The notes under the pieces are model-generated. The model saw nothing but the letters and a program-made list of their open reading frames with translations, searched no databases and was not told the DNA's origin. From positions 434,001 through 498,000 of the forward strand of contig MU008155.1 of assembly GCA_010909165.1 (NCBI GenBank): 64,000 bases of DNA, read 5' to 3'. This DNA comes from Anthoceros angustus (lineage: Eukaryota > Plantae > Anthocerotophyta). A program made the position numbers and the translations under genes. Shown piece after piece: positions 9,291-60,823 of this stretch (position 1 is the stretch's first letter; every line of letters begins with the position of its first letter).

Positions 9291-10449
9291 GCTTGCGGGT
9301 TGGCATACGTTTTCCTCCGCATCGCGGCGTAAAACATTGGCCACATGGCGGATGACGCATGATGCATGCCAATACGCTTGTCGGCATGACCGCACTTGGG
9401 TCATCTCAAGGTTGTGGAGTCCGAGGCACAAACGCCAAGGAACGGCAGCGGCAAACTCGCCCCCGCGATCCACAACGGGGTGAACGTTGGGAAGCCCCGA
9501 ACTTGCCGTGATGGGCGAACGAATCGGCCATAACGAGGGAAAGAGCAGCAGAAGCGCCGGAAGAATGGCGAGGGGCGGAGGCAATGGAAGCGCGGACGAT
9601 CGCATAGAACGGGTGGCACCGCGCCACCCCGGTGTTGTAAGGCGATTGGTGGAGGTGATATTGCGTGCGATGGACACCTCCCGCTTTTCCGTACACGGGT
9701 GTAGGGTGAACCGCAGTGACGCAACACCGCAAGTGTGATGGATGGAGAGGAAGGAGCGAGGCTGTGGTGCGCGCCTCTCATGGCGGCGATGGCAATCGCT
9801 TTTCCGCATGCGCACCTCCTTGGAATGGAAGCGAGGAGTTTGCATCGCGAGTGGCTAGTGGAAACGCCAAGAGAGCGGAATGTCAAGGTAAAACATACAG
9901 AATTTTAACGATCACAACACACGGCAGAGCGAAGGACGGTTGTCGCCCAGGCCGGTGATGCCAAGGAGGTGAAGCGGGACAAAGGGAAGCAATCGGAGAC
10001 GGGTGGTGGCCCAAGCGGGATGGCCGGAGCGGAAGGCGGTCGTGGAGGCGGGGTGTCCATGGATGGCGGGCGACGCTGGCACTCGGTATGAGAGAGGCGA
10101 CGGATGAGGAAGGGTCTACGAGGAGCTACGCTTTTGCCGCCGCTGCTATGCATAAGCTATGGCGGTGCCATGCAATTGTGGCATTGGTAGTAATAGTGGC
10201 GTGGCACTGCTACCGTGTTTGCGTGGACCGAGACGGGTGACCCGGAAAAAGTATGTTTATGTAATTGATGAGAGAACCCGAATATTGAGTTTAAAGTGAA
10301 CATTTTGGCGCCCAAGACACGACCGCGAATGTCGTGGGAAGAGGAAAGGAGTTGGCGGTTACGCCTACAAACGAAATGTAGGCCAAAGGGGTTGACTGAA
10401 GGGGCCGGGGACGTCCGTGTCATGGTTGCCAAAGGAGTTCCGCGGTTGA

Positions 10450-13400
10450 ACAGGCGGTGGACAAATGGAGTCCATGACGCAGCAGTGGCGTACACGCCAC
10501 GAGAACTGCAACTCCCATTCCGTGAAGTGCATGCCGCTTTGAGGAGGCGAACATGGGCTCAGCTGCCCCTGCAAAGTGCGCAACGGGAGGCCGTGGCCAC
10601 CGTGAACACCTCAGCCACCGAAGTGCGCCATTTGCAATATTGGGAGCGCATAAGGCGGGAAGGGTGGAGGGAGGAAGGGTGGAGGCGGGAAGGCGCACTG
10701 GGAAGACGGATGGAGGACAAGGCATGGCGGTAGTGGCGGGAGCGGGAGGCGGAGGCGACGCGACGCGGGAGGGTGGAGGAGACACGCCGCCGTGGCGCCG
10801 CGGCGGGCGGGCGACGGGAGGAAGAGCGCCATGGCGGAGGGGTACCGCCGCCATGGCGGCGGGCGGCGGCGCGGGCGGCGGCAGAGGGAGGCGGAGGGAC
10901 ACTGCGCCCCTCCCCCTGGCGGCGGCGAGGCGCCATGGCGGGCGAAGGCGCCATGCCATGCGGCGGTGGCGCTGCAGCGGCGCGGCGGCCCGGCGAGAGG
11001 AGGCGGGAGGGACACCCGTCCCTCCCCAGCGGGCGGCGGCATGGAAGGGGGCGCAAGGGATGCCCTCCGCCTGGGGTGGAGGAGGCGGGAAGGGCGGCGC
11101 ACCGCAGGCGGGTGGAGGCGGGAGGGCACCTGCCTCCCCATGGCGGAGGCGGAGGCGAGGCGGGGAGGAGGCGAAGGAAGGCGGGGAGGAGGAGGGCACG
11201 GTGGCCTCCCGTGGCGGCGGGCGGGGGCGGCGAGGCGGGGGAGGGCACCTGCCGCACAGAGGCAGAAAGAGGGGAGGCGGAGGAGGGCACCTTGCCTCCC
11301 CATGGCGGGCGACGGGAGGAAGGGCGGGCAAGAAGGGGAGGAGGAGGGGGAGGGCACCTGCCTCCCCATGGCGGCCGCCGCCCAAGGCGGGCGCAGCAGG
11401 AGGAGGAGGAGGGCACTGCCTCCCCATGGCGGCGGCATCTCGGCGTCGGCGGAGGAGGCGGCGCACCAGCCGAGGAGGAGCGGGAGGGCACCTTCCCTCC
11501 CCGCCGACGGCATCAGGTGAACGGAGCAATGGAGGAGGAGGAGGGCACCTTCCCCGAGTGATCCCCATCGGCGGGAAGGGCGGCAGCAGTGCGGAAGGGG
11601 AGGGCACGGTGCCCTTCCCCGCCGACGCAGATCGCCACGGTGCAAAGGGAGGACCCTCCCCATGGCGACCGGAACGCCATGGGGGGGGCGGGAGCAGGGG
11701 AGGCACCTTCCTCTCCCATCACGACGGCCTCCATTCGCAGCCGAGGAGGGAGGTTGCCTCCCCGCAGAGGGGGAGGCGGAGGCGAGAGGAGGCGGGAGGG
11801 ACACCCGTCCCTCCCCAGCGGGCGGCGGCATGGAAGGGCGGTGCGGTGGAGGCGGTCCCTCCGCCCTTGGGGTGGAGGCGAAGGAAGGGCGGGCGGGCGG
11901 GTGGAGGGCACCTCCCCATGGCGGCAGCAGCGGGCGGCTGCCGACAGGCGGGAGGAGGAGGAGGCACGTGGCCTCCCGTGGGCATCGCCCGGAGGCGCCG
12001 CAGCGGGCGGCGGGCGGGGGCACCTGCGCGGCAGGCGGCGGGGGCGGCGAGGCGGGGGCACCTTGCCTCTCCCCATGCAGCAGCGTCGCCCGGCAGCAGT
12101 GGCGCGGCAGAGGAGGAGGAGGAGGGCACCTGCCTCCCCATGGCGGCAGCCAGCGAGGCGGCCAGAGGAGGAGGAGGGCACCTGCCTCCCCATGGCGGCA
12201 GCATCTCCGGCGGAGGAGGAGGAGGCGAGCACAAGGGGAGGAGGAGGAGGCACCTTCCCTCCCCATGGCCGCGCCCGGCGGCGGCGGCAGGCGGCGGCGG
12301 GCGGCGGGAGGAGGAGGAGGGCACCTTCCCTCCCCATGGCGGCAGCATCCCCATCGGCGGGAAGGCGCGCGCGGCGGCGGGCGGAAGGGGAGGCACGGTG
12401 CCCTTCCCCGCCAGCATCGCCACAGTGCGAGGAGGAGGCACCTCCCCATGGCGGCAGAACGCCAGCGAGGGGGCGCATCAGCGGGCGGGGCGAGGCACCT
12501 TCCCTCTCTCCCATCACAGCAGCCTCAGGAGGAGGTTGCCTCCCGGCGGTGGCGGTGCGGGCGAGGAGGAAGCCAACCCGCGGTGGAGGACGCCGACGAG
12601 GCCGAGGGGGTGGACAAATGGAGTCCATGACGAGGCGGTGGCGGCACGCGCCACGAGAACTGCAACTCCCATTCCGTGAAGTGCATGCAAGCCCGGTTTG
12701 AGGAGGCGAACATGGGGCGGCCCGGCAGAGGAGGAGCGGGAGGCCGTGGCCGTCACCTCGCGCCGGCAGTGCATTTGCAATATTGGGAGCGTACAAGGCG
12801 GGAAGGCGGGTGGAGGTGAAGGCTCAGCGCGTTGTGGGGAAGACGGATGGAGGACAAGGGCATGGCGGTAGTGGCGGGAGCGGGGAGGCGGAGGCGGCGG
12901 CGCGGGCGGGAGGTGGAGGAGACTGTCCCGTGGCGGCTGGCGATGCGCGGCGGCGAGGAGAGCGCCATGGCGGAGATGCCGCCGCCATGGCGGCGTGGCG
13001 CGGCGGCAGCGAGGAGGCGGGAGGGACACAGTCCTCCCCTTGGCGGCGGCATGGAAGGGGGCGCAAGGGTGGAGGGGCCCCTCCGCCCTTGGGGTGGAGG
13101 AGGCGAAGGAAGGCTGCGGAGGCGGTGGAGGGCACGGTGGCCTCCCGCCACACATCGGCAGCGGCGGGCGGCGGCAGCAGCGGGAGGAGGGGAGGGCACG
13201 GTGGCCTCCCGTGCAAGCATCGCCCGGAGGCGCCGCGAGGCGGCGGAGGAGGGCACTGCAGCGCGGCGGCGGAGGAGGCGGCGGGCGGGGGCACCTTGCC
13301 CTCCCCATGGCGGCGATCGCCGCCGAGACCGAGGCCGAGGGGGTGGAGGAGGAGGGCACCTGCCTCCCCATGGCGGAGGCGCCATGGCGGCGGCAGCAGC

Positions 13401-14480
13401 GGGAGGAGGAGGGCACCTTGCCCCCTCCCCATGGCTCTCAGCCGGGAGGAAGGCGCACCGGCGGGAGGAGGATGCGGAGGCACCTTCCCTCCCCATGGCG
13501 GCAGCGGCGGGCGAGGCAGCGGCGGGAGGAGGAGGAGGGCACCTTCCCTCCCCACAGCGCAGCCCCCCAGCGGGCGGCGGCGGAGGAGGGCACGGTGCCC
13601 TTCCCCGCCAACGCCAGTGAGGCGGCGGGGGCACCTCCCCATGGCGGCGGCGAGGCGGCGGCATGGAAGGGGAGGCGAGGCGAGGGCACCTTCCTCTCCC
13701 ATCACACGGCCTCCGGTTCGCGAGGAGGAGGTTGCCTCCCGGCGGGGCGGTGGCGGAGGCGAGGAGGAAGCCAACGGGTGGAGGGGACGCCGGAGGCGAT
13801 GGCCGCCGGCAGGCCGAGGTGGAGGAGGAGGCGGAGGCGGGCGGCGATGGCGGCCGCCGCCCGAGCCGAGAGGTCGAGCTGCATGGCGGTGGCAGTAATG
13901 TCCGCCGCCATGCCCGAGCCGGAGGTCGCCATGGTGGCGGAGGGGCGATCGCCGCCGAGACCGAGGCCGACGGATGGCCCGCCGATGGCGGAATGAGGCG
14001 GATGCGATGGGGCGACGCCATCCTGCCCGGACAATGAGGCAACCGCTGGGCCGGCGGCGATCGCTGCAGGGGAGTGGGATCGAGCGCCAGCCGCTTGAGG
14101 AAGCCGCCACGGAGGAATAACCGCCCATCGCGGCATCTCGACGCCGAGGAAGCAGCAGATTAGCGGAGGCTCGGGAGGCGGTGGCGGAGGCGGAGGCGGA
14201 GGCGCTGCGCGAGCTCACGCGGAGGCCAGATCCGCACACCGGAGGAGGAGGAGGGGAGCAACGGCACCGAGGCGGCGGAGCGGAGGCGGCTGGGAGAAGG
14301 AGAGTGGCCCGACCCCAACCCGCGGAGGCGAGCACAAGGGGAGGAAGCGCGATTACGAGGAATCGGACGGTCCGGCGGAAGCGCAGCCAAGGCGGGAGGC
14401 GGTGCCTCCGGCCGAATGCCCAACGCGCCTGGAGGCGGCGAGGCGGCGGCGGAGGCGGAGGCGATGGCGGAATGCTCGAC
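10450..14480. repeat. Very GC-rich, G-skewed repeat tract built on the motif GGAGGAGGAGGGCACCT(G/T)CCTCCCCATGGCGGC, with a ~2.15-kb higher-order duplication
   Basis: The motif recurs many times. The block gtggacaaatggagtccatgacg...cgccacgagaactgcaactcccattccgtgaagtgcatgc occurs at ~10457 and ~12610. Confidence 0.85.
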
Positions 14481-15522
14481 GCCGTGGAGGCCATGGAGGG
14501 CACAATTAAGGTTCTCCGCAGATGATCAAGCGCATGGATGACGAGGGAAGTAGGCGCTGCCATCCCTTGTGCTCGAGTTGCATCCAGCGCTTTTGGTTTT
14601 GCATAGGGGCGAGGCATGCGCGAGGAAGGCCGCAGAGGGGAGATAGGGTTTGATGCTACTGCAATTTTGCGATGTGTGCGTGGACATCCTTTTGATGAAT
14701 GGAATGGCACCCTTATCATGTGAGCGGCTCGTTGGAGGGACCGTAAACTTTGTTGGTGAGGTATCGACCGTGAATCGCGACATGTCCTCGAATGCCTTCC
14801 TCGCTGTTTGATCGCCATCATCTGCATTTGACGAAACGCAATGGAGAAGGATGTCCTACTCCCGTAGCGATGGGATCGAGGAGTGGTAGAACAAATTTAA
14901 GCGTGGATTCCCCAAATCCCACCACAGTAGTCTCGCCACATGCACCCGATTTCTTGAGGCAATCAAGGCGGCTTCTATGTTCCAAAGAATATTGAACCCT
15001 CCACACGCCGCCGTGTCCGCGTCTTCGCTGGACAATGGAATCGTGATTTTGTGAGGGAGCCTATCATGCTGGAAACATTGAGAAGGACGATGGTGCTCGC
15101 CACGGTAAGAAGCAAGAGCCTGCTCGAATGAAAACAACATGGTGGTGCCGTGCGCAGACCATCATTGCATTCGCATACCATGGCGCGATCGGTAGGGTTC
15201 GCAACCACACTGGTGTGGTCGGCGCGGGAGGCGTGTTAGGGTTTGCCATCCATGGCGGGCCATGGAAGAAAACTTTATGGCAGAAGGTAGGGTGGAAGGC
15301 TGAAAACAATGTGTCACGGCTCTTTGTTTTGAAAGTTGCAAGGACAAAAACATTTTCAACCCTACACCCTTTTCGAGGAGAGCGTGTGTGTCCCCTTTGG
15401 TGCTTGGCCGCTGTTGGTTAGGGCGCCAAAGCGGCCATGTGACCATGTGCTGTAAAAAAAGATACCGTACTGGAATCAACGGCATATTCCTCAAGATCCC
15501 CACGGTTTGCATGGGTTTCGCG

Positions 15523-23188: not shown

Positions 23189-25693
23189 TCATACAGTTGG
23201 CACCAGCATTCTCCCCACCCCCAGGTATTCCGCAGCAAACTCCTGGTCTGACTTGGACAGGACTGTTTGCAGGTCGAAGTCCAACTTGCGCCTCGCAAGC
23301 ACCATAGCTCTCGGTTTGATTCTTTTTTCGAGAGAGAAGCTGAAAAACCTGGGGTAGAAAAATACATCTTCTACAGGTTTGCCCATGGAGTCCACAAGGA
23401 AGTCTAACTTGGGTTTCAAAACAGCCGCAATGGAGTATCCTACAAGTGGAGGAAACCGGTACACCATCTCGGCCACATCTTCCTGGCATAAGCCCCTTTC
23501 CTGAAGGTAGTCCATTCTGCAGGAATGAAACGTCAGTCACACGCATTTCTCGGACTCTGAAGATTTTGCACATATTTCAGTCCAGGCTACAGGCCATTAA
23601 GAAGGACAGGCACATACCGTGGTTTGATTGACATAGTGACACTCATTGACAGCACTTGGGGGTACCACCTTACTACCCTGCCAAGCTGCTCTCTTGGGAC
23701 TCCAAGCTCCAACAGATAATTCAAATTGCGCTGCAGCGTCTTCTCAATGTCTGAAGAGAACACCTCTGGTGTACGAAGGAGAATTTTTTTCACATCGTCG
23801 TCATTTTCCACTCCAGTGTCTCGCAAGAATTGAACAACCTGCTCGGCAGCAGTTCAGGTAGGCCAGTGATGATAAAGCCATGGTCTAAAACAGAGTGACT
23901 TGTGCCAGGACAGAGTCCAGGCGCGGGGCGTCCACTAGCAGAGAATTGAGCAGTCCGAACAACCAAACAAAGACTTGCCTGCTGGAACTCCCGTGGGCCT
24001 CTCAGGAGGAGGTTTGGCGAACTGCCGATTGCTCCTCCCAATCTCCTGCTCTTGGCACCGACCTGATTCATAGCATCAATCATCGGCTGGAAAGTTCGTG
24101 TCGGTGAGCCACCTAAGAGCAGAGGATACTTTGTAATTGCACGGTGCAGCTTGCTCTTGGGTACCTGGATCACAAGCCTGAAGTCAGAGTGGAAGCAGAA
24201 CCCTACAAAGCAACATCTTACACATCGAAAAAGCATGGTTGGCATACCTTCACAGCGTCCAGAAACTCTACAGTCTTGGAAACATTGTCCTCCACACACC
24301 TGCTCAGAAGCCAAGGATATTTTACAATCATGTGGCCTAGATCCCTTGCACGCACACCTACCTGGAGCACCAGGAGACAAACATCAAGGCTAACACTCGA
24401 CACGTTTTCCTAAGGTGTGTGAATCTGCTGGCTTGCGACTTACTGCTCTTAGCTTCTTCATTCGTGGCTTGAGCTCCTCTTCAACATCGTATTGCAGAAA
24501 TGGAGGAAAGCACAAGATGACACGTCCAAAGCTCTGTCTTGGCACACCTACTTCTTCCAAGTAGGAAAGCACAGGCTTCAGCTGCAATTCCAGACTCCGA
24601 AGCAGAATTTGAGGAAAGCCTTCAATAATAAGGGCCACAGCCTTGTCTTTATCACTGAAAGCACGGAGTGCCCCACGCTGAGCTTCCATCTACCAATAGC
24701 TTGAAAACAGGACAAAAACTAGTTAGAAGCCTCAAAGGCTAGCATACATAAGTGTTGCAAACAGCAGAGCGATAACAAGCGGAGCTTGAACCTTTTCAAA
24801 CAGAGAAAGAGTCCTCTGAAGATCATCATCGACATAGAGCGATATTCTCTTCATCATAACTCGAATTTGATCTTCCAGACCGACTTTCCTATCGTCTGCT
24901 GGCGGCACCAGCGCTTCTAAAAACCTCACCTGGAACAGGAGAAGTCAATCAGTTCAGAAACCTAACCACGTCCCGAAGTTGCTGATGCCACAAACAGCAA
25001 GCAGCAAGCAGCAAGACGAGTAGGACACAAGACCACCTTCGCCAACAGCTCTGCCAAGTTCCTTCCAGACAGAAGGTGAGCTATCCTCGGGATCTGAGAA
25101 AGGCGAACACCAACACTCTCCAGGAAAGGGGCCAGCTGCCTTCCAGAGCTCCTGAAAGCAATCTGAAGCAACCGAAATCTGTACACTGCAGGATCGCTAT
25201 CAGAATAACTAGTCGTGGCATCTTCACCTGAACTCAGAATGCCCAGGTCGCTCAACTCCTTGTCGGCATCAATCAGCCTTTGAGCATAGACAGGCGCTTT
25301 GGCAGATACCGAGAGAGCATCCTCTTCGGACAGCCCGCCCTGCATCATGAATTCTGCAACCGCGGCACTAGCCTCGGCCATGGCATCATAACCATCGCTT
25401 TCATGAGATGTGGCCCCAGCAGCATCACCTCCATCATCCTCTTTCATATCGCCCCTCCCTTGTTCAGCATTCTGGGCAAACAGAGGATACAGGACTCTCC
25501 GATTCCACAGCCCAACAAATCCCACACCCCCTGAGCCCCCGGATTCCCATGGCCTAGCAGCATCCTCACCAGGCCTCCACAAAACTGAACACTTCTGCTT
25601 CCTGCCAGACCCGCAGAGGAGTGCCTGCCCACCAGCATGCCAAAGGCAGGTGCGAGGCGGGAACGGTAAGCCCAGCATGGCCGCCACTCGCAT
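23189..25693 (-). CDS. MTERF8: mTERF family protein, plastid-type, most like mTERF8/pTAC15; multi-exon
   Basis: mTERF repeats (FPQILLRSLELQLKPVLSYL, KYPWLLS, FPPLVGYSIAAVLKPKLDFL, YPRFFSFSLEKRIKPR) and a C-terminal SDQEFAAEYLG recalled as similar to pTAC15. Transit-peptide-like N-terminus. Family is secure; the orthology call is from memory. Confidence 0.85.
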
Positions 25694-26029
25694 CGGATTC
25701 CGACCCAGCACACCTGGCTTTACCTAGGAAGAGAGAGCTCGGTGCTGCGTAAAAGCTTATTTTCTATGTCGTTTCTGCGGTCTGGACAGGATGTTGCGAG
25801 AGCTGGACGCGTGGTGCATCCAGCGCATTTGGGTAGCATTGTTGCGAGCATTTCGCAAGCTGGCAACCCAGTTCGAGGGTCGTTGTATTTCCTTCCATCT
25901 CTTGGCTTTGGGGCACTTCCATGCCGGGACACTATGGCCGGGGTTGTGGCTGTGGCTGCTGGATCGAAGACTGCTCTAAGATTGTGCGAACGAGCTCAAT
26001 TCGGGAGGCTGTGAACTCCGGCTTTCAAC

Positions 26030-27790
26030 ATGGATGAGACTCAGGTGCAGTTCCTTTGCCTGCTCTGCGTCTGCACGTACTGCCCTCAAGTGGCCAAGTT
26101 CTCGGCCCATCCCCAGCTCTCCAATGTCAGTACCTGCCCGGTGAGGCCGCCGGCGGTGGAGCCTCCTCCCCTGGCTCTGGATGGGCCCGCCGGGGAAGCT
26201 CAGGAATGGAATGTGGCTTGGTGGGCGATGGTGGCGGTGCTGCTGGCGGTGTTGCTGGCTGTGGGCAGATTCCTGAAGGTCTACTGGTGGGACTTGCTGG
26301 TCCTGAAGGCGGACCTGGAGAGGAAGGGAGTGCTGGGTCCTCCGTTCCGTTTCCTTGCTGGGAATCTCGGGGAGATGAGCGGCATGGCGAGGAAGGCCCA
26401 GGAGATGCCCATGGCAGAGATCAGCCACGACATTGTGCCTCGGGTGTTTCCGTATTACCGGGAATGGGCCAAGCTCTACGGCAAGCCCTTCCTCGTGTTC
26501 GTCGGCCCGCAGCCCACCTTGGTGACCAGTGATCCGATCCTGCTGGATGCCATCTTCAAGACCAAGCCCGGGCAGCTCCACAACGGCTGGCTGCAGAGAG
26601 TGTACGTGAAGATGACCTTGGGGGAGGCGGGGCTGGTACTGGCCGAAGGGGAGAGCTGGAAGTCCTGGACTGACAAGGCCGGGGTGGTGACGGATGCCCT
26701 CAACTCCGACAGAGTGGATGCCATTGTGAAAACCATGGTGAAGGCTGTGAAGACGGAGCTGTTTGAGGACTGGGACAAGGAGTTGAGGCACTCTGGGGAT
26801 CACACTTCCGAGATTGACATCTGCAAGAAGGTGAGCAAGCTCACCACCAAGGCTCTGTCCCACACGGCCTTCAGCAGCAGCCACAGGAAGGAGGGGAAGA
26901 AGGTGTTCAAGAAGCAGATGGAGCTGATGGAGATTCAGACGGAGCTTTCGCAGAGGAGGGTTTGGATTCCGGGATGGCTCCCCTCTCGTAGGCAGCGGAG
27001 GATGCTGAAGCTCAGGCGAAGGATTGAATCCACGCTTCATGAGATCGTGACTGAGCGGGTGGGCTCGATCAGGGCAGGCGGGAAGGCCTTCCCTTCTTAT
27101 GGTAACGATCTTCTGGGGCATATCCTGAGCAACGCCAAGAGTAGGAGGCTGGACTGGGACATCGAGCAGATAGTAGACCACTGCAGGAACTTCTTCTTCG
27201 CAGGCTACGAGACCAGCGCCATCATGCTGTCCTGGACTCTCATGCTGCTGGGGCACTACACGAAATGGCAAGACCGGGCTCGGGCCGAGATCCTCGAGCT
27301 CTGCGGAGACGAGGCCCCCGAGGCCGCCCAGCTGAGCGAGATGAAGGTTCTGGGCATGGTGTTGAAGGAGTCCCTGCGGCTCTACCCTCCCTCCGCCGTC
27401 CTCTCCAGGGAGATCCAAAAGCAGGCCACCCTCAATGGCCTGGAAGTCCCCAAAGGTCTAGCCACCTTCACCCTGGTGCTGCAGCTGCACCGGGAGCCCG
27501 GGATTTGGGGAGACGATGCTCTGGAGTTCAAGCCGGAGCGGTTTGCAGATGGCCTGCCCGACGGCCTCCATCCTCTGGGATACTTGCCCTTCTCGTCTGG
27601 ACGTCTGGTGTCTGTGGGGCAGGCTTATGCTGTTCTGGAGGCTAAGGTCGTGCTCGCCATGTTCCTCCAGAGATACATCTTCCATCTCTCCCCCAAATAC
27701 AAGCATTGTCCCAACACTCTCGCTCTGCGGCCTGAGCATGGAGTTCCCCTCATTGTGAGGAAGCGCCTCCCTGACTATCCAGACCCATAG
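26030..27790 (+). CDS. Cytochrome P450, CYP72 clan (CYP72/709/734-like); heme-ligand Cys replaced by Ser. Start at 26030 or 26228.
   Basis: N-terminal TM helix, GVLGPPFRFLAGN, HDIVPRVFPYY..W..LYG, I-helix FFFAGYETSA, ESLRLYPP (ExxR), FKPERF, heme loop FSSGRLVSVGQ. Uninterrupted ORF. Confidence 0.93.
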   Translation: MDETQVQFLCLLCVCTYCPQVAKFSAHPQLSNVSTCPVRPPAVEPPPLALDGPAGEAQEWNVAWWAMVAVLLAVLLAVGRFLKVYWWDLLVLKADLERKGVLGPPFRFLAGNLGEMSGMARKAQEMPMAEISHDIVPRVFPYYREWAKLYGKPFLVFVGPQPTLVTSDPILLDAIFKTKPGQLHNGWLQRVYVKMTLGEAGLVLAEGESWKSWTDKAGVVTDALNSDRVDAIVKTMVKAVKTELFEDWDKELRHSGDHTSEIDICKKVSKLTTKALSHTAFSSSHRKEGKKVFKKQMELMEIQTELSQRRVWIPGWLPSRRQRRMLKLRRRIESTLHEIVTERVGSIRAGGKAFPSYGNDLLGHILSNAKSRRLDWDIEQIVDHCRNFFFAGYETSAIMLSWTLMLLGHYTKWQDRARAEILELCGDEAPEAAQLSEMKVLGMVLKESLRLYPPSAVLSREIQKQATLNGLEVPKGLATFTLVLQLHREPGIWGDDALEFKPERFADGLPDGLHPLGYLPFSSGRLVSVGQAYAVLEAKVVLAMFLQRYIFHLSPKYKHCPNTLALRPEHGVPLIVRKRLPDYPDP

Positions 27791-28339
27791 CGTTAGTGGA
27801 GCCCCGTAGCCACGCACCCGGGATTGCGACAGTATGGAAGGAACGTCGATCTTGCAGCCAGGAGAAACATCACTCTCTTATTTATGAACATCGGAGTCTC
27901 CTCTTTCAGGACAAGAGAAACATCACTCTCTTATTTATGAGCATCAGAGTCTTCTCTTCCACAACAGTTGGATGTCGATGTGCACTATCAAGCACATGTT
28001 GATTGCCTCAGAATGTGCTTTACTAACAGCTCGTCAGCCACAACGAAGTGATTCATAAGCACGTGCTGAAGGGATTTTGTACATGTTCTAGTAGAGAGCC
28101 GTAGCCACGAAGAAGTGATTCCTACACACATGCTGGTGTGCTCTACATATGCTCTAGTAGGCTTAGAGGCACAGCCACAAGGAAGTATTTCAGACACATG
28201 CTGGTGGGTCTTGCAACGTGGTAGTTCATCACACATATGGTACAAGGTGGCAGTTCCTCACACACATGCTGCATGGTGGTGGTTCATCATGCACATGCTA
28301 CGCTGGTGAGCTCCACATCTCTTCTGGTGAACTCTGCTA

Positions 28340-28420
28340 TGCCGGTGGGCTTTACATCTGTTCTGGTGGGCTTCACGTGTGTTCTGGTGGGCTTCACATC
28401 TGTTCTGGTGGGCTCTACAT
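28340..28420. repeat. 21-bp tandem repeat (~4 copies)
   Basis: ggtgggcttcacatctgttct repeated. Confidence 0.85.
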
Positions 28421-28631: not shown

Positions 28632-28820
28632 GTTGCAGCTTCTGGGCTCCAGGTGATGCAAATGTCTTTGGTCAGCAGTGAGCAGCAAGCTGTTGTCTAT
28701 TGTAGCTTCTGGGCTCCAGGTGATGCAAATGTCTTTGGTCAGCAGTGAGCAGCAAGCTGTTGTCTGTTGCAGCTTCTGGGCTCCAGGTTATGTAGATGGC
28801 TTCGGTCAGCAGCAAGCTGG
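28632..28820. repeat. 67-bp tandem repeat (~2.7 copies)
   Basis: agcttctgggctccaggtgatgcaaatgtctttggtcagcagtgagcagcaagctgttgtct repeated. Confidence 0.9.
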
Positions 28821-29799
28821 TCTAGCACTCCGCCCTTGACCCAGGGCCAGGACCATTTACGTATGAATTCATGGTGGATTGTGCGGTTGTATGCAAGCGA
28901 ACGCTCACGCATGACATCATATTGACATCACTGAATTCACGAGTTCCAACCAACAACCCCTTGTCCTTCCTTTAGTGTCTGGCATTGAAGCAAGCGTGAT
29001 GCCATCCATTTATGCACATCTGCCGCAGGTAGCGGAAGTCTAGACCTAAAGACCGCAGACTGCGGTGATGCCGGTTGCATTCCACTGGTCGACTCACAGG
29101 GGGGAACGTGGCCAGTTCCTCAAGCAAGTGCTCAAGCCAGCATCTTTACATCCGCTGCCTGGAAGGCTGTGCATATGGCCCATTGTGATTTGCGACTCCA
29201 AACCACCACTTGTGACGTTCCCGGGTGGCTCCAGGCTGAGTCCAAAGTCGCCTTCCAGTTATCAACCAAAGGTGTGTAAGAAACCCACGCGGTTACCGGG
29301 ACCGGGACCCACAAACTTTCATGGGTCCGCTTCGGGTTCGGGGTGGACATGGAATCTTGTAAGCCTGTATCTGAATATTTAATGAGGAAAGGGAGCGGAA
29401 GAAATTGTACGAAGTTATATATCAATTACTAAGTACTGAAAATAAGTGTCACATTTTTAGGCTGTCGCATGAAAACCTCACCCTTAGGATGACTTAAATG
29501 TAGTTTCTCCATGAAGGTATGGGGCCTCACAACATATATGAAATTCTTTGTCCCCCAGCAATGATACACCAAAGAGTACAAGGCTTCCTTAACTTGTCCA
29601 CTATTTGAGTAATTGCCGAACTATGCCTTCGAAGCACCAATTTACAGGTTATCCATGCACAAGGGCATCTCCTGTGTAGGCACAAAATTTGTCTACATTG
29701 CCATTTTGTTGATGTCGACAATGAAGCTCATTTCTTTCTTACCTACCCAACCATCCATCCTCTCTGTTAAGACTTCCCTCAACATTTTTACAATAATCT

Positions 29800-29995
29800 A
29801 CCATGGTCACTAGCTCTCCTTCAATTTCCAACCCAAGAGCTGATAACCTACCTTGGCCACAAGCTCTCCATCAATTTGCAGCCCAAGAGGAGATAACCTA
29901 CCATGGCCACAAGCTCTCCATCAATTTGCAGCCCAAGAGGAGATAACCTACCATGGCCACAAGCTCTCCATCAATTTCCAGCCCAAGGGGAGATC
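29800..29995. repeat. 50-bp tandem repeat (~4 copies)
   Basis: acctaccatggccacaagctctccatcaatttgcagcccaagaggagata repeated. Confidence 0.9.
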
Positions 29996-31141: not shown

Positions 31142-32763
31142 CTCGGTAAGGACGAACCGGGAGAGCACAAGAAACCACACGAGCCAAAAAAAAACTAGCA
31201 AAGCTATGACACCTTGGATTTCACTTTCCACCTTTTGAGAAAATAGTAGTCTAACACTATGGCTGAATAGGTCACATATCACATATATAGGTCCTATACC
31301 TGAAAAAAAAAAATCGTCGCAAGTACATATGTGTCTACGTACATAAGCGAAGGAGAGGCAATAGTGTGTACATCCGTACATGTATGTTGGCATTGCGCCA
31401 GTGCACCATTGTCCCATTGCACGGCAGCATGGGGAATGCGTTGCTCATCCGAAACGCCTCCTCTTCAACGAGACGAAGATGACAAAACCATCACAAACAT
31501 GATGATGGCTGCAGATATCGACGATGTGGGCCCGGCAGCGGCAGCGGCAGCGGCAGCTTGCGGGGAAGAGGCGGGCCGCACTGCCCTGCCCTGCCCTGCC
31601 CTGCCAGCCCCAGCCCCAAGTCGTCGCCTTGCCACTTGCAGCTTGCCGCTTCACGTTTGCAGGCAAAACGGCCACGGCAGCGGGCGACCGGTCCCGCCGA
31701 CGGGTCGCCCGCCGGCGCCCGGTCCCGGCGTGTGGGGCCCCGGCGCGTGCGCGGAAGGTTCGTGCCGTTGACGAGGGCGGTGGCAGTACAGCCCACCACA
31801 ATCCCATCACTGAGATCCGGCGCCCGTTCCGTTTGCCCGTTTGCCCCTTCCTGTGCCCCTTCCGCCCCCTCGGACCCTCCAAACCCCGCTCGTGTTAGAA
31901 AGCCGGCGCCTAATTTGGAGCCCGCGGCGTCACGCAAACTATTTTTAGCCACCTCCTCCGCTGTCACCCCCCATTATTATCACGGTACCCACTTGCCCGC
32001 GCCCACCGGTCGCTGCAGTACGTGCGGACGACCGGTCGGCCCCGGCCTCGGAGCCTTCCCCGTCTCCGCGCCTTGCGCCTTGCGCTTGCAGAGCTGCTGC
32101 CTGCCGTGCTCGCTCCCGCAGCAGCCGAGGCCTGGTGGGAGCGTCTTCCTCGCCTGCCTCGGCGCCGGGGATTCCGCGGTTTTTTGCGCGGTTCGAACGT
32201 GGGAGGCCAATCCGGGGCGCGGGGATCGGAATTCCTGCTGAGGTTGGAGACTCAGAATGGGCTCGGGAAGGCGCATTTCCTGGTGATCGAGGTCGCGGCC
32301 GGCGGGAGGGCGACGGAGCGGGATGCTGGAAGACGGAGGCGTGGCGAGGGGGAATTGTTTTTGTGGGCGGTAGTGGATGTGGTGCGGCGGATGCGTGAAG
32401 GGGATGGGGATGTTTGTATGTGCATGAGGTGATGCCATTGCGAGATGGGCGGTAGGATGGGGAGAGGGAAGGTGGGGCTGGATGGTGGTGCTGTGGGAGC
32501 GCAGATTCGGGCCTTGAGATGTGGGGAGGTGCGGGGAGGAGCGGGAGGCGAGATGGGGAGGTGCCCGCTGTCTGGGGGGGAGGACGGGTCGCTGCCGGGA
32601 CAATGCACGGGTGTTGCTGCCGAATTGTGCAGTGTCGGATGTGCGGGAGATGGTGGTGCGGCGTCCGGGGTTGAGGTGGGGGAAGGGGAGGTGTCGTAGG
32701 TGTGGCTCTGTGGCCATGGTGCGGACATGTTAGGTTTTCCCTGCCCAGCTTCTTCGGTTGTGT

Positions 32764-35700
32764 ATGATGGTTAGAGGGACGTGGCTCTTCCTCCTCTTCT
32801 GCTGCTTCCTCCCGTGCTGCCTCACGGTCGCTCCCGGCCCTGCTCCCGGCCCTGCTCCCGGCCCTGCTCCTGCGCCAGATGGCGATTCCAGTCCTGGGGC
32901 GTCGCTCATCCCGATACTGTCGTATTGCGACGTCGGGGATCAGAATTTTCTGCTGAGGTTAAAGGATGGTTTGGATAACGGGGCTGATGTGCTTGGGGTA
33001 TGGTCGAATGACAGCAGCTGTTGCAGCTGGCCGGGGGTTAAGTGCAGCAAGCGAGCGAGCGGGCTTGGAGGAGGAGAGTTCCAGGCCGCGAGTACTGTGA
33101 ACAAGAATGTGTACAGGGTTGTGTATCTCGATTTGTCAGAATTGGGGCTTAATGGCACCATCGGCGAGCTGGCTTGGAGGAACTTATCCGGCCTGGAAGG
33201 GCTGGATCTGTCGTCCAATTTTCTGTCCGGGTCCCTCCCTGAGGACCTGGGCGTGCTCCCGTCGTTGGGAAAGGTTGACCTCAGTAACAACAGCTTCAGT
33301 TGCTGTGCAGCTGTTTTGGAGCAGTGTTCTAGCCTTGTGGAACTGAACTTGAGTAACAACCGCCTTTCTGGCCCTGTCCCCGTGAACTTCTCCAGCTCGG
33401 GTTTGAAGAGTCTTGATCTCAGTTTCAACAGGTTATCATCCTCACTGCAAGCTCTGGAGAACCTAGGGAGCCTGGAATACCTGAATGTATCGTATAACCA
33501 AATCACGGGACAGCTTCCCCTTCTCCCAAACTGTTCTGCTCTTGCGGACATTGACCTCAGCTCCAATCAGTTCTCAGGTGATTTCAACGCAGATATGTGC
33601 TCTATGAAGGGCAGCCTCCGGTTACTCAATGTTTCCGGCAACAATCTGGGTGGAACCATACCATCCGGCATCTCTCAATGCTCCAGTCTCCAGGTTTTGG
33701 ATCTGGGGTTTAATAACCTCAGCGGCGAAATCCCTGACGCCATTTTCCGTCTGGAGAGCCTTACCATGCTTTCTTTGGGAAGCAATCGTCTAGGGGGAAA
33801 TCTGAGTGCCTCAGTGGCAAACTTGGCCAACCTGACGAATCTGGTTCTTGCCAACAATTATGTATCTGGAGCTATTCCCCCTGAGTTGGGGGCCTTGACA
33901 ATGTTGGAGCGGCTCGACCTGAGTGTTAACAAGTTTATTGGGTCTATTCCCCCCGAGCTCTCGAATTGCACCAATCTTCTTGTCCTCATTCTCAGGCGCA
34001 ATAACTTGACTGGTGATATATCTCTGGACTTTGAGAAGCTGCCTAACATGACAACTGTTGACCTGTCATTCAACGCTCTATCTGGTGTCATCCCTTCAAG
34101 CATTGGCCTGTGTAGTCACTTGGAGTCTCTTGTGCTTGGCACAAACAATCTCACTGGGATGATCCCTCCTGAGCTCGGACGGTTGAAGAACCTAACAACG
34201 TTATCTCTGTCTACTAACAATCTCACAGGGGGCATACCAGCAGAGTTGGATGGATGTTCAGGATTGGTGTCTATGCTGTTGACAAAGAATCCTTGGCTGG
34301 GGGGTGAAATTCCTGCTAACATGTCAGCATTTCCTAACCTGCAGCTTCTGGCTGTAGGGTTTTGTGGTCTCGAGGGGCAAATTCCGGACTGGATTGGTCA
34401 CTGCAGCAAGTTGCAGTTGTTGGACCTGTCGTGGAATCACTTCACGGGCTTTATACCACCGTGGATCAGTGACCTGCAGCATTTGATCTACTTGGAACTT
34501 TCAAACAACACTTTGACAGGGCCTATTCCATATAATCTGTCTACTGCTCCAAGTTTAAGAGGAGAGAACGTAAGTACGACTGGTCTGGTTGAGGTTACCA
34601 CTCTTGTCCTCTTTGTGAAGAAGAACACAAGCAGTGCTGCCTTGCCTCAGAGATACACCAAGTTGAGTTCCTTTCCTCCTTCACTGCTTCTTGCCTACAA
34701 CAAGTTGTATGGTCCGATTCCCGACGCACTGGGCATGTTACGCAGTGTCATGGCTCTTGATCTGAATCACAATAACCTGACTGGCCCTATTCCAGACTCA
34801 TTGTCAAACATGAGTAGCATGTACTCCCTGAACCTTGCGAACAATGACCTGTCTGGCCCTATCCCTTCCTCATTCACAGCGCTGAACTTTCTTGCTTTGT
34901 TCGATGTCTCGAATAACAACCTCTCTGGTCCCATTCCTGGAGGTCCTCAGTTTGATTCCTTCCCGAATACCTCCTTTCTTGGTAACCCTCTTCTTTGTGG
35001 TGGGTCTCTGTCACAGAAATGTGGCTCTCAGCAGGAGGCAGCCTCCAGTCCTCACGGCTTAGATTTGCCTGTGGATGACCAAAGGCTAAGTAAAAGAGCC
35101 ATCTTGGGACTGACGATGGGAGTTGGCGTAGGTCTTGCCGTTCTGTTGGCTTTGCTGACAATGTGCATTCTGTCTCGGCGCCGTGGCAAGTCACCAGCTG
35201 ATGATGAGACTACTGAGTACACAGATGACGGTATTGTTAGTTTCAGTGTCGACCTGTATCTGAATGACCAGTTGTCTAAACTGTCTCCGGCTGACTTGGT
35301 GAAGGCTACGAACAACTTCGACCAATCGAACATCATAGGGTGTGGTGGTTTTGGTTTAGTATTCCGGGCAACATTGTCAGACGGAACTCATGTGGCTATC
35401 AAAAGATTGACTGGTGACACAGGGCAAGCTGAGCGCGAGGTACAAGCAGAGCTACTAACGCTGGGTCAAATTCTGCACAAGAATCTGGTGGCTTTGCAAG
35501 GGTACTGTAGGTTTGGGAACGACCGTCTGCTTATCTACAACTACATGGAGAACGGGAGTCTGGATTTCTGGCTTCATGAAAAGAGTGATGGTGGATTGAA
35601 GCTAGATTGGCCCATGAGACGAAGGATTGCACTGGGTACTGCCAGAGGGCTCGCCTACCTTCATCAAATGTGTGAGCCACACATTGTTCACAGGGACATC

Positions 35701-36195
35701 AAAAGCAGCAACATTCTCCTCAATGAGAATTTTGAGGCCCATCTTGCAGACTTTGGGCTTGCAAGGCACCTGGCCAACACTGATACGCATGTGACTACAG
35801 AGTTGGTGGGCACTCTTGGGTATATCCCTCCAGAATATGGGCAAGCATGGATTGCCACACTGAGGGGCGATGTGTACAGTTTTGGTGTTGTAGTATTAGA
35901 GCTTCTGACTCGCCGACGGCCAGTAGAGGTCTCCCGCAAGAAAGGGGTGGCTGACCTGGTGTCTTGGGTGCAGCAGATGAGGAATGAGGGAACTGCAGAG
36001 GAGACCTTTGATGTTCTATTGAGACATCAAGGTTATGAGAGCGAAATGCTCCAAGTTTTAGACGTAGCCACTATGTGTGTGAATCACATCCCGCAGAAGA
36101 GACCCACAATCCAGCATGTGGTTTTCCTGCTTGAGCAGGTTGGGAAGGAGGTTTCAGAGAAGGAGACTCATGTCGACACTGGGCTGCTTGCTTGA
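32764..36195 (+). CDS. PSKR: LRR receptor-like kinase, phytosulfokine receptor (PSKR/PSY1R, LRR-Xb)-like, intronless
   Basis: Signal peptide, CCSWPGVKC cap, ~20 LRRs, island domain ending LFVKKNTSSAALPQRYTKLSSFPPSL, TM helix, and kinase motifs ATNNFDQSNIIGCGGFGLV, HRDIKSSNILL, DFGLAR, THVTTELVGTLGYIPPEYGQAWIATLRGDVYS. Confidence 0.93.
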   Translation: MMVRGTWLFLLFCCFLPCCLTVAPGPAPGPAPGPAPAPDGDSSPGASLIPILSYCDVGDQNFLLRLKDGLDNGADVLGVWSNDSSCCSWPGVKCSKRASGLGGGEFQAASTVNKNVYRVVYLDLSELGLNGTIGELAWRNLSGLEGLDLSSNFLSGSLPEDLGVLPSLGKVDLSNNSFSCCAAVLEQCSSLVELNLSNNRLSGPVPVNFSSSGLKSLDLSFNRLSSSLQALENLGSLEYLNVSYNQITGQLPLLPNCSALADIDLSSNQFSGDFNADMCSMKGSLRLLNVSGNNLGGTIPSGISQCSSLQVLDLGFNNLSGEIPDAIFRLESLTMLSLGSNRLGGNLSASVANLANLTNLVLANNYVSGAIPPELGALTMLERLDLSVNKFIGSIPPELSNCTNLLVLILRRNNLTGDISLDFEKLPNMTTVDLSFNALSGVIPSSIGLCSHLESLVLGTNNLTGMIPPELGRLKNLTTLSLSTNNLTGGIPAELDGCSGLVSMLLTKNPWLGGEIPANMSAFPNLQLLAVGFCGLEGQIPDWIGHCSKLQLLDLSWNHFTGFIPPWISDLQHLIYLELSNNTLTGPIPYNLSTAPSLRGENVSTTGLVEVTTLVLFVKKNTSSAALPQRYTKLSSFPPSLLLAYNKLYGPIPDALGMLRSVMALDLNHNNLTGPIPDSLSNMSSMYSLNLANNDLSGPIPSSFTALNFLALFDVSNNNLSGPIPGGPQFDSFPNTSFLGNPLLCGGSLSQKCGSQQEAASSPHGLDLPVDDQRLSKRAILGLTMGVGVGLAVLLALLTMCILSRRRGKSPADDETTEYTDDGIVSFSVDLYLNDQLSKLSPADLVKATNNFDQSNIIGCGGFGLVFRATLSDGTHVAIKRLTGDTGQAEREVQAELLTLGQILHKNLVALQGYCRFGNDRLLIYNYMENGSLDFWLHEKSDGGLKLDWPMRRRIALGTARGLAYLHQMCEPHIVHRDIKSSNILLNENFEAHLADFGLARHLANTDTHVTTELVGTLGYIPPEYGQAWIATLRGDVYSFGVVVLELLTRRRPVEVSRKKGVADLVSWVQQMRNEGTAEETFDVLLRHQGYESEMLQVLDVATMCVNHIPQKRPTIQHVVFLLEQVGKEVSEKETHVDTGLLA

Positions 36196-59561: not shown

Positions 59562-60568
59562 CTACAGGGAATTGGCAGGCACAGCTTCCAGCAGCCGCGA
59601 GAAGTAGAATTTGGTAGCGGTCATATCCCTGCGCTTGACGACCCAGCCGGCAGCCTTCAGAGCAGCCTCCACATCCTCCTCCGCATGCAGATAAGCTCTG
59701 GTGGCCTTGGAAGGGCCAGGGAAGAGCTCCCCGATCCGCTTCAGCACGGAGTAGTAGAGCGTCTTGGGAGCAAAGCTGAGCACCAGTCTCTTGTCCGCCA
59801 GGGACGCAAGGTGCGTGATCATCCCGCCGGCCTTGTCCTGCGGGTAATGGATGAGCACATCCAGGCAAGTCACAATGTCGTACTTCCCGGACAGGGATTC
59901 CAGGTCCCGGGCCTCAAACCTAGGCAGCGTGACGTTCTTCCCATCCCTAACCGCGCTCTCCACCGCGTCGGAAGCCCTGGCCCCGGCCTCGGCCACCATA
60001 GCCGACGAAATGTCGCTTGCGCTCACCACGGCCCCCTCCAGCGCCAGGGGGATGGCCAGGCTCCCGGTCCCGCACCCGGCGTCGCACACCGTGGCCCCCT
60101 GCAGCTCCCCGTCCCGGAGCAGCGCCATCACCTTCTCCACCGTCTGCGCGTGGCCCTGCCGGATGTCCAGCTGCACCGAGTTCACGTCGTCCGTTTCTCC
60201 ATAGATCCGCTTCCACCTCTCGAAGCCCTGCGTGTTGAAGTAGTTCCGCACCACGTCCTTCTCGTCTCCCCCGGCCTCGGCCGCCTGCTTCTGCCGCCGC
60301 TTCTCGGGGTCCGCGATCGAGAGCGCCGCTGCCAAAGCGGCTATGGCGCCCCGCCCGCCAGCGCGAACGTCACCCCGGATCCGCCATCTTCCAGCAATGC
60401 CGCCCTCGCGCCGTGCTGCCGCGCCCGGTAGGATTGCGGAGCGGGAGCAGCGCTTGCCGGCAGCCTCGTCCGCCACACCAGGCTCCCGTTCCTGCTCGTC
60501 CCTGCCCTCGGCTCCTCGCTCTTTGCAGCGCAACTGCACAGCAGTGATCCGCTTCCTGCTGCCGCCAT
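59562..60568 (-). CDS. CHLM: Magnesium-protoporphyrin IX O-methyltransferase; apparent 1-nt frameshift near 60350 in the transit/anchor region
   Basis: DPEKRRQKQA, VVRNYFNTQGFERWKRIYG, VQLDIRQGHAQTV, CDAGCGTGSL, CLDVLIHYPQ, SFAPKT..LKRIGELFPGPSKATRAYLH, FYFSRLLEA. Confidence 0.95.
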
Positions 60569-60823
60569 CGCAGCTGCGCCTGCCACTTCCGAGCGCCTCC
60601 AAACCCACGCTAAAACCTCGCCTCGCCCTTTCTGCTGCTTCCATGGCTGCTGCTGCTGCTACTGGCTGGGTCCTTGATCCCGCATTATCCAACTCCCCTG
60701 ACGTGGCGACTCCATGTTGTAAATGTCTTCGTACGCCATTCATGGCCAGACTTTCCTCACGTTTTGTTGGCGCTGTTGGCGCTGTTTTCCTGGTTAAAAA
60801 GTGTTAGCAACCTGCATTTTGAG

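Follow-up and report, generated by a model that had tools for sequence, protein, structure and literature searches.

Can a plant cytochrome P450 lose its axial cysteine and still be maintained as a functional gene? It is by the axial cysteine that P450s are defined, and to our knowledge the first natural exceptions were published in 2024 and are all bacterial. The question is raised by a gene in a 64,000-nucleotide stretch of the genome of the hornwort Anthoceros angustus (contig MU008155.1, positions 434,001 to 498,000), referred to below as the window, in whose numbering all coordinates are given. An original prediction, made from the letters of this stretch, had described the open reading frame (ORF) at 26030-27790 of the forward strand as an intact P450 of the CYP72 clan with serine in place of the axial cysteine, and had favoured a non-canonical function over random decay. 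The gene is referred to here as Ser-P450.

An intact P450 gene with serine at the axial position

The ORF at 26030-27790 comprises 586 codons and a stop in a single exon and contains no internal stop codon. Residues 142-561 of the product match positions 25-444 (of 462) of the Pfam profile PF00067 with an E-value of 2e-57 and a score of 195 bits (cut-off 22.8), as expected of a member of the P450 superfamily. The motifs listed in the original prediction were all located and their coordinates recomputed. In the I-helix the sequence A-G-Y-E-T-S (27200-27217; A-A-Y-E-T-F in the orthologue described below) retains the acid-alcohol pair, and the fold-stabilising triad made up of the K-helix ExxR (E-S-L-R, E447/R450; 27368-27379) and the PERF motif (P502-F505; 27533-27544) is present in both species. 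An AlphaFold2 model calculated from a 60-row alignment shows a confidently predicted P450 fold (predicted local distance difference test, pLDDT, 87; predicted template-modelling score 0.86), with CYP3A4, CYP97C1 and CYP4B1 as the best Foldseek matches (template-modelling scores 0.75-0.86, normalised by target). A membrane anchor is predicted at residues 62-79 (26213-26266; Kyte-Doolittle maximum 2.8-3.0), which lie within a long modelled helix (residues 54-98) and align with the anchors of canonical relatives.

The heme-binding loop reads F-S-S-G-R-L-V-S-V-G (F521-G530; 27590-27619), with Ser528 encoded by TCT at 27611-27613, and thus departs from the consensus F-x-x-G-x-R-x-C-x-G. In the HMMER alignment to P450 BM3, P-F-S-S-G-R-L-V-S-V-G-Q stands over P-F-G-N-G-Q-R-A-C-I-G-Q and Ser528 falls on the axial cysteine; the position of the loop arginine is taken by Leu526, as had been claimed, and the usual proline position by Arg525. 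Among the relatives aligned from the word-index and HMMER searches the axial column holds cysteine in 165 of 167, in agreement with the near-invariance that the prediction had assumed, and serine only in the window protein and its orthologue. When 74 full-length clan relatives were aligned with MAFFT, 73 carried cysteine; the remaining row, P0144, is a truncated or misaligned sequence and not a second case.

Three routes by which a cysteine might be rescued were considered and rejected. Editing of the RNA would need a C-to-G change to turn TCT into TGT, codon 528 is not the TGA of selenocysteine, and the alignment with relatives is collinear across the loop, where a hidden intron would have to lie.

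Contigs from two public sequencing runs of the same organism agree with the serine codon. Those of the first run (X1) cover 25914-27503 and 27522-28400 with 0 differing letters, and those of the second (X2) cover the whole stretch with one G>A difference and a few gaps. Given that both runs possibly derive from the same sample as the assembly, their independent support for the codon is weak, and the stronger support for a real serine comes from comparison with the orthologue.

The serine is shared with an orthologue in another species

A word-index protein search returned a single close relative, P0001 (55-62% identity, depending on the aligner), which is encoded on a 17.5-kb genomic contig (L001) of the run SRR33208241; P0002 in the same search is a canonical P450 with 36% identity. 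The loop of P0001 reads F-S-A-G-K-V-V-S-V-G, with serine at the same place and the loop arginine again lost. Its axial codon is TCC, synonymous with the TCT of the window, and both are one step away from TGY. The start called for P0001 is a GTG, the true start being an ATG 15 nt upstream (L001:7986), so that the initial methionine is conserved between the orthologue (M-E-E-H-D) and the window protein (M-D-E-T-Q), as is the position of the stop. No further serine-bearing relative was present among the best 150 of the 37,421 matches obtained when 1.84 billion representatives were searched exhaustively with HMMER, and a word search with a two-sequence profile of the window protein and P0001 returned no further member of the clade. 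Outside the P450 gene no similarity between L001 and the window was found, a comparison that is uninformative at such divergence.

The window also encodes CHLM, the Mg-protoporphyrin methyltransferase, for which a 90% identical homologue comes from the same sample as P0001, and the two gene pairs could therefore be compared. The proportion of synonymous differences (pS) was 0.567 for CHLM and 0.554 for Ser-P450, and the synonymous distances (dS) were 1.06 and 1.01. The ratios of nonsynonymous to synonymous distance (dN/dS) were 0.18 and 0.30 (bootstrap 0.24-0.38), respectively; all dN/dS values given here are approximate, since dS is near saturation and the two species have different GC contents at third codon positions (GC3; 0.79 and 0.94). 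Because the synonymous distances of the two pairs are equal and near-saturated, the P450 genes behave like an orthologous pair separated at speciation, and the change from cysteine to serine therefore predates that event.

Selective constraint is strongest around the serine loop

The overall dN/dS of 0.30 indicated purifying selection, and its distribution along the protein was uneven. Over residues 6-485 the ratio varied from 0.24 to 0.57, whereas over residues 486-586, which include the PERF motif, the serine loop, the L-helix and the C-terminal sheet, it was 0.08-0.09 and the identity of 80-85% was the highest in the protein. The coding sequence is collinear with that of P0001 and with canonical relatives, and no frame breaks were seen in the alignment. 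Two further organisms, B and C, have copies that are about 95% identical, and all the indels listed for them lie outside 26030-27790. The Ser-bearing orthologue, the low ratio and the undisturbed frame in these additional species favour a non-canonical function over random decay, as was originally proposed.

Ser-P450 is placed within the plant CYP72 clan

The nearest cysteine-bearing relatives are 36-39% identical and belong to Ginkgo, Selaginella, Diphasiastrum, Pteridium and Marchantia paleacea; those from Selaginella carry the NCBI names cytokinin hydroxylase, CYP709B2 or CYP72A15-like. In a 60-row tree from a quick IQ-TREE search, P0001 and the window protein formed one clade with full support, and its stem, with 0.88 changes per site, was the longest inner branch. 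The pair fell inside a plant group of 55 rows (Shimodaira-Hasegawa-like approximate likelihood ratio test 97), with a reptile CYP3A and bacterial P450s outside, and no sister group of the pair was supported in this quick-search tree. The nearest named relatives and the position in the tree agree and support membership of the plant CYP72 clan, which is the label that the gene had been given from its sequence. An identity of 40% is the customary line for a named CYP family, and as the highest identity to any cysteine-bearing relative is 39%, the two proteins would by this custom form a CYP family of their own.

The canonical P450s of the clan (CYP72, CYP709, CYP735 'cytokinin hydroxylase', CYP714/734 and similar) are thus the closest relatives of Ser-P450, which is nested within their radiation and has in common with them the GNxxE, HDI, ExxR, PERF and C-terminal Y-x-H-x-P motifs. 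It differs from them in the absence of the cysteine, the loop arginine and the basic C-helix, in an identity below 40%, in the long stem branch and in an additional N-terminal domain. The annotated protein P0031 of Saponaria officinalis (KAK9674534.1) has 1012 residues and two P450 domains in tandem, and is either a gene fusion or two adjoining CYP72-clan genes merged by annotation.

Heme contacts and the proximal face have been remodelled

Columns with a conservation of 85% or more among the 74 full-length canonical relatives were audited in both species. Those kept in both are G100, G111, W210, A391/E394/T395, W402, W413-Q414, E447/R450 and Y452-P454, followed by H487, W493-G494, F500, P502/R504/F505, P520-F521, G524 and G530 and, towards the C-terminus, A534, K539 and Y557/H559/P561. 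Altered in both are C528S, R526 (to Leu or Val), P525 (to Arg or Lys), P222D, F224L and K230 (to Asp or Arg), as well as A512G, F533Y and F549Y. The basic residue at position 525 occupies a column with proline in 55/74 canonical members. Changes confined to one species are R214T in the window protein and R460M and G392A in the orthologue.

Several of the alterations lie in the C-helix and the segment joining it to the D-helix (26657-26701). Here W210 is kept, and the WxxxR motif reads W-K-S-W-T (26657-26671), as had been noted, with threonine in a column where 67/74 canonical members have arginine. It is followed by the insertion K-A-G (26675-26683) and by D-A-L (26693-26701) in place of the canonical P-A-F (proline in 59/74, phenylalanine in 67/74). 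An insertion of 3-5 residues directly after the C-helix is found in both species and in no canonical row. The net charge of the C-helix segment is 0 in the window protein and -3 in the orthologue, compared with a canonical mean of +3.0 (range 0 to +6). In P450s this basic proximal surface is the docking site for the reductase with its acidic FMN domain.

Arg460 in beta 1-4 (27407-27409) is retained in the window protein and is methionine in L001, in an alignment column (690) with arginine in 65/74 canonical members. We take R214, R460 and R526 to be the propionate anchors by analogy with R130, R375 and R440 of CYP3A4, the residue roles being those established for CYP3A4 and BM3 and not taken from coordinates. 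The residues that pack against the porphyrin or shape the loop (F521, G524, G530, A534, A391, T395 and W210) are kept in both species, and none of them has been exchanged for a bulky residue that would fill the heme site.

The original prediction had spoken of three changes focused on heme contacts. Two of these, C528S and the loss of the loop arginine, are shared and ancestral. The third, R214T, is specific to one lineage, with R460M in the orthologue instead, and the remodelling is wider than had been supposed, including the insertion after the C-helix, the loss of proximal charge, the basic residue at 525 and an N-terminal extension.

An N-terminal extension is specific to the clade

Residues 1-60 (26030-26209) form an extension that is conserved in the orthologue (60% identity, dN/dS 0.33) and is absent from canonical relatives, whose alignments start at about residue 60-70 of the query. 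It contains a hydrophobic cysteine cluster, C-x-x-C-x-C-x-x-C (26057-26083), and an N-glycosylation sequon, NVS (26123-26131), both conserved, the latter as NGT. With Cys36, which lies outside the cluster, all five cysteines of the extension are conserved in the orthologue. In the model, residues 1-40 have a pLDDT below 50. The flanks of the membrane anchor are acidic before and basic after it, which predicts the usual orientation with a cytosolic P450 domain, and the extension would therefore face the lumen. The conserved sequon and cysteines would make sense for a lumenal extension, and such a glycosylated, cysteine-rich domain, if the prediction holds, hints at a location or partner unlike those of ordinary microsomal P450s.

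Evidence of transcription

The X1 contigs cover 25914-28400 (forward strand), a probable transcript with a leader of about 116 nt and a long trailer, and leave the upstream spacer at 25684-25913 without coverage, whereas the DNA-like run X2 covers everything; that X1 is an RNA run is a guess. In organism C the whole gene lies on a single contig of 2,429 nt, which starts about 230 nt ahead of it and continues for at least 365 nt past it. Both patterns are suggestive of a transcript and are not proof of one.

An ORF of 249 residues without a Pfam match lies divergently upstream on the reverse strand (24962-25711), and X1 contigs cover it up to 25683. This ORF may represent exon 1 of an adjacent gene, in which case the spacer of 230 bp could serve as a shared bidirectional promoter.

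Possible function of the serine-bearing protein

We put at about even chances the reading that Ser-P450 is a functioning CYP72-clan gene, conserved between orthologues, which lost its thiolate before the split of the two species, likely carries a heme that is ligated by serine or only weakly ligated, and is no longer a reductase-driven monooxygenase. Its starting points are observations: the gene is intact, both species have the axial serine, purifying selection is strongest around the loop, the protein belongs to the clan, and the proximal elements are remodelled. Retention of heme, uncoupling from the reductase and the kind of chemistry are inferred from these. The cysteine would have been replaced by serine before the separation of two lineages whose synonymous divergence is now saturating, and purifying selection would have acted since. 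The protein would still fold as a membrane-anchored P450, with porphyrin most likely in the old heme site, Ser528 or a water molecule under the iron and the propionates anchored more weakly than in canonical P450s. The basic patch that docks NADPH-P450 reductase would be gone from the proximal face. Because both the thiolate and this docking face are lacking, reductase-driven, oxygen-activating monooxygenation would no longer be performed, whether or not heme is bound, and the chemistry of a serine-ligated heme without thiolate push might take over. Candidate roles are the turnover of a peroxide or of a substrate oxidised beforehand, as in the reductase-independent CYP74 enzymes, or the use of the conserved distal pocket to bind a gas or a ligand.

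Several features of the two sequences favour retention of the heme. The old heme loop and the L-helix are the most constrained part of the protein, the small residues of the porphyrin space and the Glu-Thr pair of the I-helix have been kept in both species, and a basic residue has arisen beside the lost arginine in both. By analogy, serine could act as the ligand, as it is a proven one in the engineered P411 enzymes and in the native bacterial P450-G9. The more specific proposal, in which Ser-P450 would be the first eukaryotic heme P450 with native serine ligation, belonging to a membrane-bound hornwort lineage with a long-kept serine alkoxide and reductase-free, non-thiolate chemistry, is put forward only tentatively.

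Other observations weigh against the favoured reading. Of the four conserved residues that serve as heme ligand or heme anchor, three have been lost in each species (C528 and R526 in both, R214 in the window protein and R460 in the orthologue), and the independent loss of two different anchors looks like relaxed constraint on heme binding. The pLDDT of the model falls to 66 exactly over residues 521-530, with flanks at 91-98. The serine clade consists of two protein sequences only, in which codon 528 was read, and expression rests on a run that is guessed to be RNA.

It is possible, though we consider it less likely, that the protein is instead a heme-free pseudoenzyme, in which the P450 fold provides a scaffold at the membrane, binds a ligand or acts allosterically on another enzyme, and Ser528 has a structural role only. 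The order of losses would fit, given that cysteine and loop arginine disappeared in the ancestor and a different propionate arginine then went in each lineage, leaving one of the three canonical ones in each species. The long stem branch is what would be expected with a functional change, a redox partner is unlikely for a proximal face that is no longer basic, the model is least confident at the loop, and heme-free P450 homologues of the EryCII/DesVIII type are established in bacteria. The degenerate, unconstrained heme region that such a protein should have was not found, since the loop and L-helix are the most constrained segment (dN/dS 0.08), and the conserved porphyrin-space residues and Glu-Thr pair, together with the compensating basic residue next to the lost arginine, likewise speak for a heme. 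It would also be odd for a heme cavity to stay empty yet unfilled over saturating divergence, and among the nine ORFs scanned no partner gene is evident beside the P450.

An ordinary oxygenating P450 that uses the usual reductase, with Ser528 or a nearby residue replacing the cysteine, is unlikely. Conservation of the acid-alcohol pair, of ExxR and PERF and of the regions for substrate recognition would fit such an enzyme, but P450s mutated from cysteine to serine lose monooxygenase activity, there is no other conserved cysteine or histidine near the loop (C560 is serine in the orthologue) and the charge for reductase docking has been lost.

That the gene is a young pseudogene or decaying retrocopy whose frame has stayed open by luck is highly improbable. 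The gene is intronless, like a retrocopy, and a GC3 of 0.79 favours long chance ORFs, as is seen from an antisense ORF of 480 residues (25976-27418, reverse strand) that overlaps the coding sequence. Against this, the orthologue is also intact at a dS of about 1, with its start methionine and stop position conserved, the upper bootstrap bound of dN/dS is 0.38, and the copies of organisms B and C, which are about 5% divergent, have none of their listed indels inside the coding sequence. Neither stops nor frameshifts, as would be expected of a processed pseudogene, occur in the two species at a dN/dS of 0.30; because a neutral copy would have gained many of both over such a distance, decay is ruled out, and judged from these comparisons the gene is selectively maintained. 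The antisense ORF itself is most likely a by-product of GC-rich third positions and not a gene. A sequencing or assembly error at 27612, with TGT as the true codon, has a negligible chance, as two separate contig sets from the same organism agree on the codon, X1 without any difference, and the orthologue in another species likewise has serine.

Comparison with known P450s that lack the axial cysteine

The closest parallel is bacterial. A screen of RefSeq found 880 non-cysteine P450 homologues in bacteria, among them three serine families (ncCYP families G, R and T) with a crystal structure showing Ser-O-Fe ligation (P450-G9, PDB 9CJG), and the native serine-ligated protein binds heme with a Soret peak at about 403 nm and an Fe(II)-CO peak at about 410 nm (Nguy et al. 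2024, bioRxiv 10.1101/2024.12.22.630014). The same work sets the heme-free P450-derived glycosyltransferase activating factors (PDGAF) apart from the serine families, and the words 'plant', 'eukaryote' and 'fungus' are absent from its text. Ser-P450 resembles the ncCYP proteins in being a natural P450 fold with a family-conserved serine at the aligned axial position and the rest of the fold intact. The ncCYP proteins are soluble and bacterial, whereas Ser-P450 is a predicted membrane-anchored protein of the land-plant CYP72 clan, and the change therefore arose independently of theirs. Unlike them, Ser-P450 has lost propionate arginines and the basic proximal patch and has gained an N-terminal extension; heme binding was demonstrated for P450-G9, and Ser-P450 is known here from its sequence. 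Native serine-ligated P450s thus being already known in bacteria, the plant case would be distinguished as eukaryotic, membrane-bound and independent, with a second-sphere remodelling of its own.

The engineered P411 enzymes (P450 BM3 C400S and its descendants) have the identical cysteine-to-serine replacement at the same loop position. P411 starts from this one substitution, and neither its fused reductase nor any further heme contact is altered, whereas in Ser-P450 the loop arginine, the C-helix or beta 1-4 arginine and the docking charge are also altered. Carbene or nitrene chemistry cannot be inferred from the sequence of Ser-P450.

The PDGAF proteins EryCII and DesVIII share with Ser-P450 the absence of the axial cysteine from a P450 fold, and their role is not that of an oxygenase. 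Their heme region is reportedly degenerate, as said of EryCII; they are without heme and adjoin a glycosyltransferase in bacterial clusters, whereas in Ser-P450 the loop is the most conserved part and no such partner is evident. Among eukaryotes, members of the oomycete family CYP5619D likewise lack the CXG cysteine (Sci Rep 2018, PMC5919972). Unlike Ser-P450 these are fusions of a peroxidase/dioxygenase with a P450 that has a wholly degenerate heme motif, and they belong to an unrelated clan outside the plants.

In a 2024 review of plant P450 motifs cysteine is given as the axial ligand, and loss of motifs is noted only in clans 710, 727, 74 and 51. No description of a plant P450 with axial serine or without the cysteine was found in the literature, of which the coverage was incomplete; one candidate report (PMC12647599) concerns an FAD oxidase and not a P450.

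A plant example under purifying selection would show that eukaryotes, too, have repurposed the P450 fold, and would give a naturally evolved scaffold of the P411 type to set beside the engineered enzymes. Should the protein prove to lack heme, it would be the eukaryotic equivalent of the P450-derived helpers of bacteria, and no such plant protein was found in the literature. Given that Anthoceros agrestis is a transformable model (PMC8717380), the role of a natural serine P450 would be open to genetics as well as spectroscopy.

Other features of the window

An intact gene for a leucine-rich repeat (LRR) receptor kinase (32758-36195, forward strand; 1145 residues in a single exon, with LRRNT_2, many LRRs and a kinase domain) lies 5 kb downstream of the P450, and the window also encodes a DUF1664 protein and an Obg-type GTPase. 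CHLM is encoded at 59562-60743 on the reverse strand by an ORF of 393 residues, and its best named matches, in a moss, a lycophyte and Ginkgo, are 77-81% identical, with one Logan protein at 90%. This gene content is that of a land plant, and the similar distance of CHLM to all three groups fits a lineage for which the collection has no named proteins, such as the hornworts. The first 30-odd residues of this ORF are without counterpart in the orthologue of 356 residues (L003:1001-2071, L004:44-1114), and the real start may be a later methionine. The CHLM orthologue is also found on a cDNA-like contig of 1.27 kb from the run SRR33208242, and RNA data for the sister species therefore probably exist.

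The region at 10400-14830 has a GC content of 70-75% with strong GC and AT skew and is built from degenerate tandem units, 52-73 bp long, that share the core GGAGGAGG-GCACCT-CCCTCCCCATGGCGGC; ORFs of 300-700 residues on both of its strands gave no Pfam match. Three short tandem arrays are located just 3' of the P450, at 28214-28420 (units of 21-29 bp), 28633-28812 (67 bp) and 29793-29994 (50 bp), the first of them inside the stretch covered by X1.

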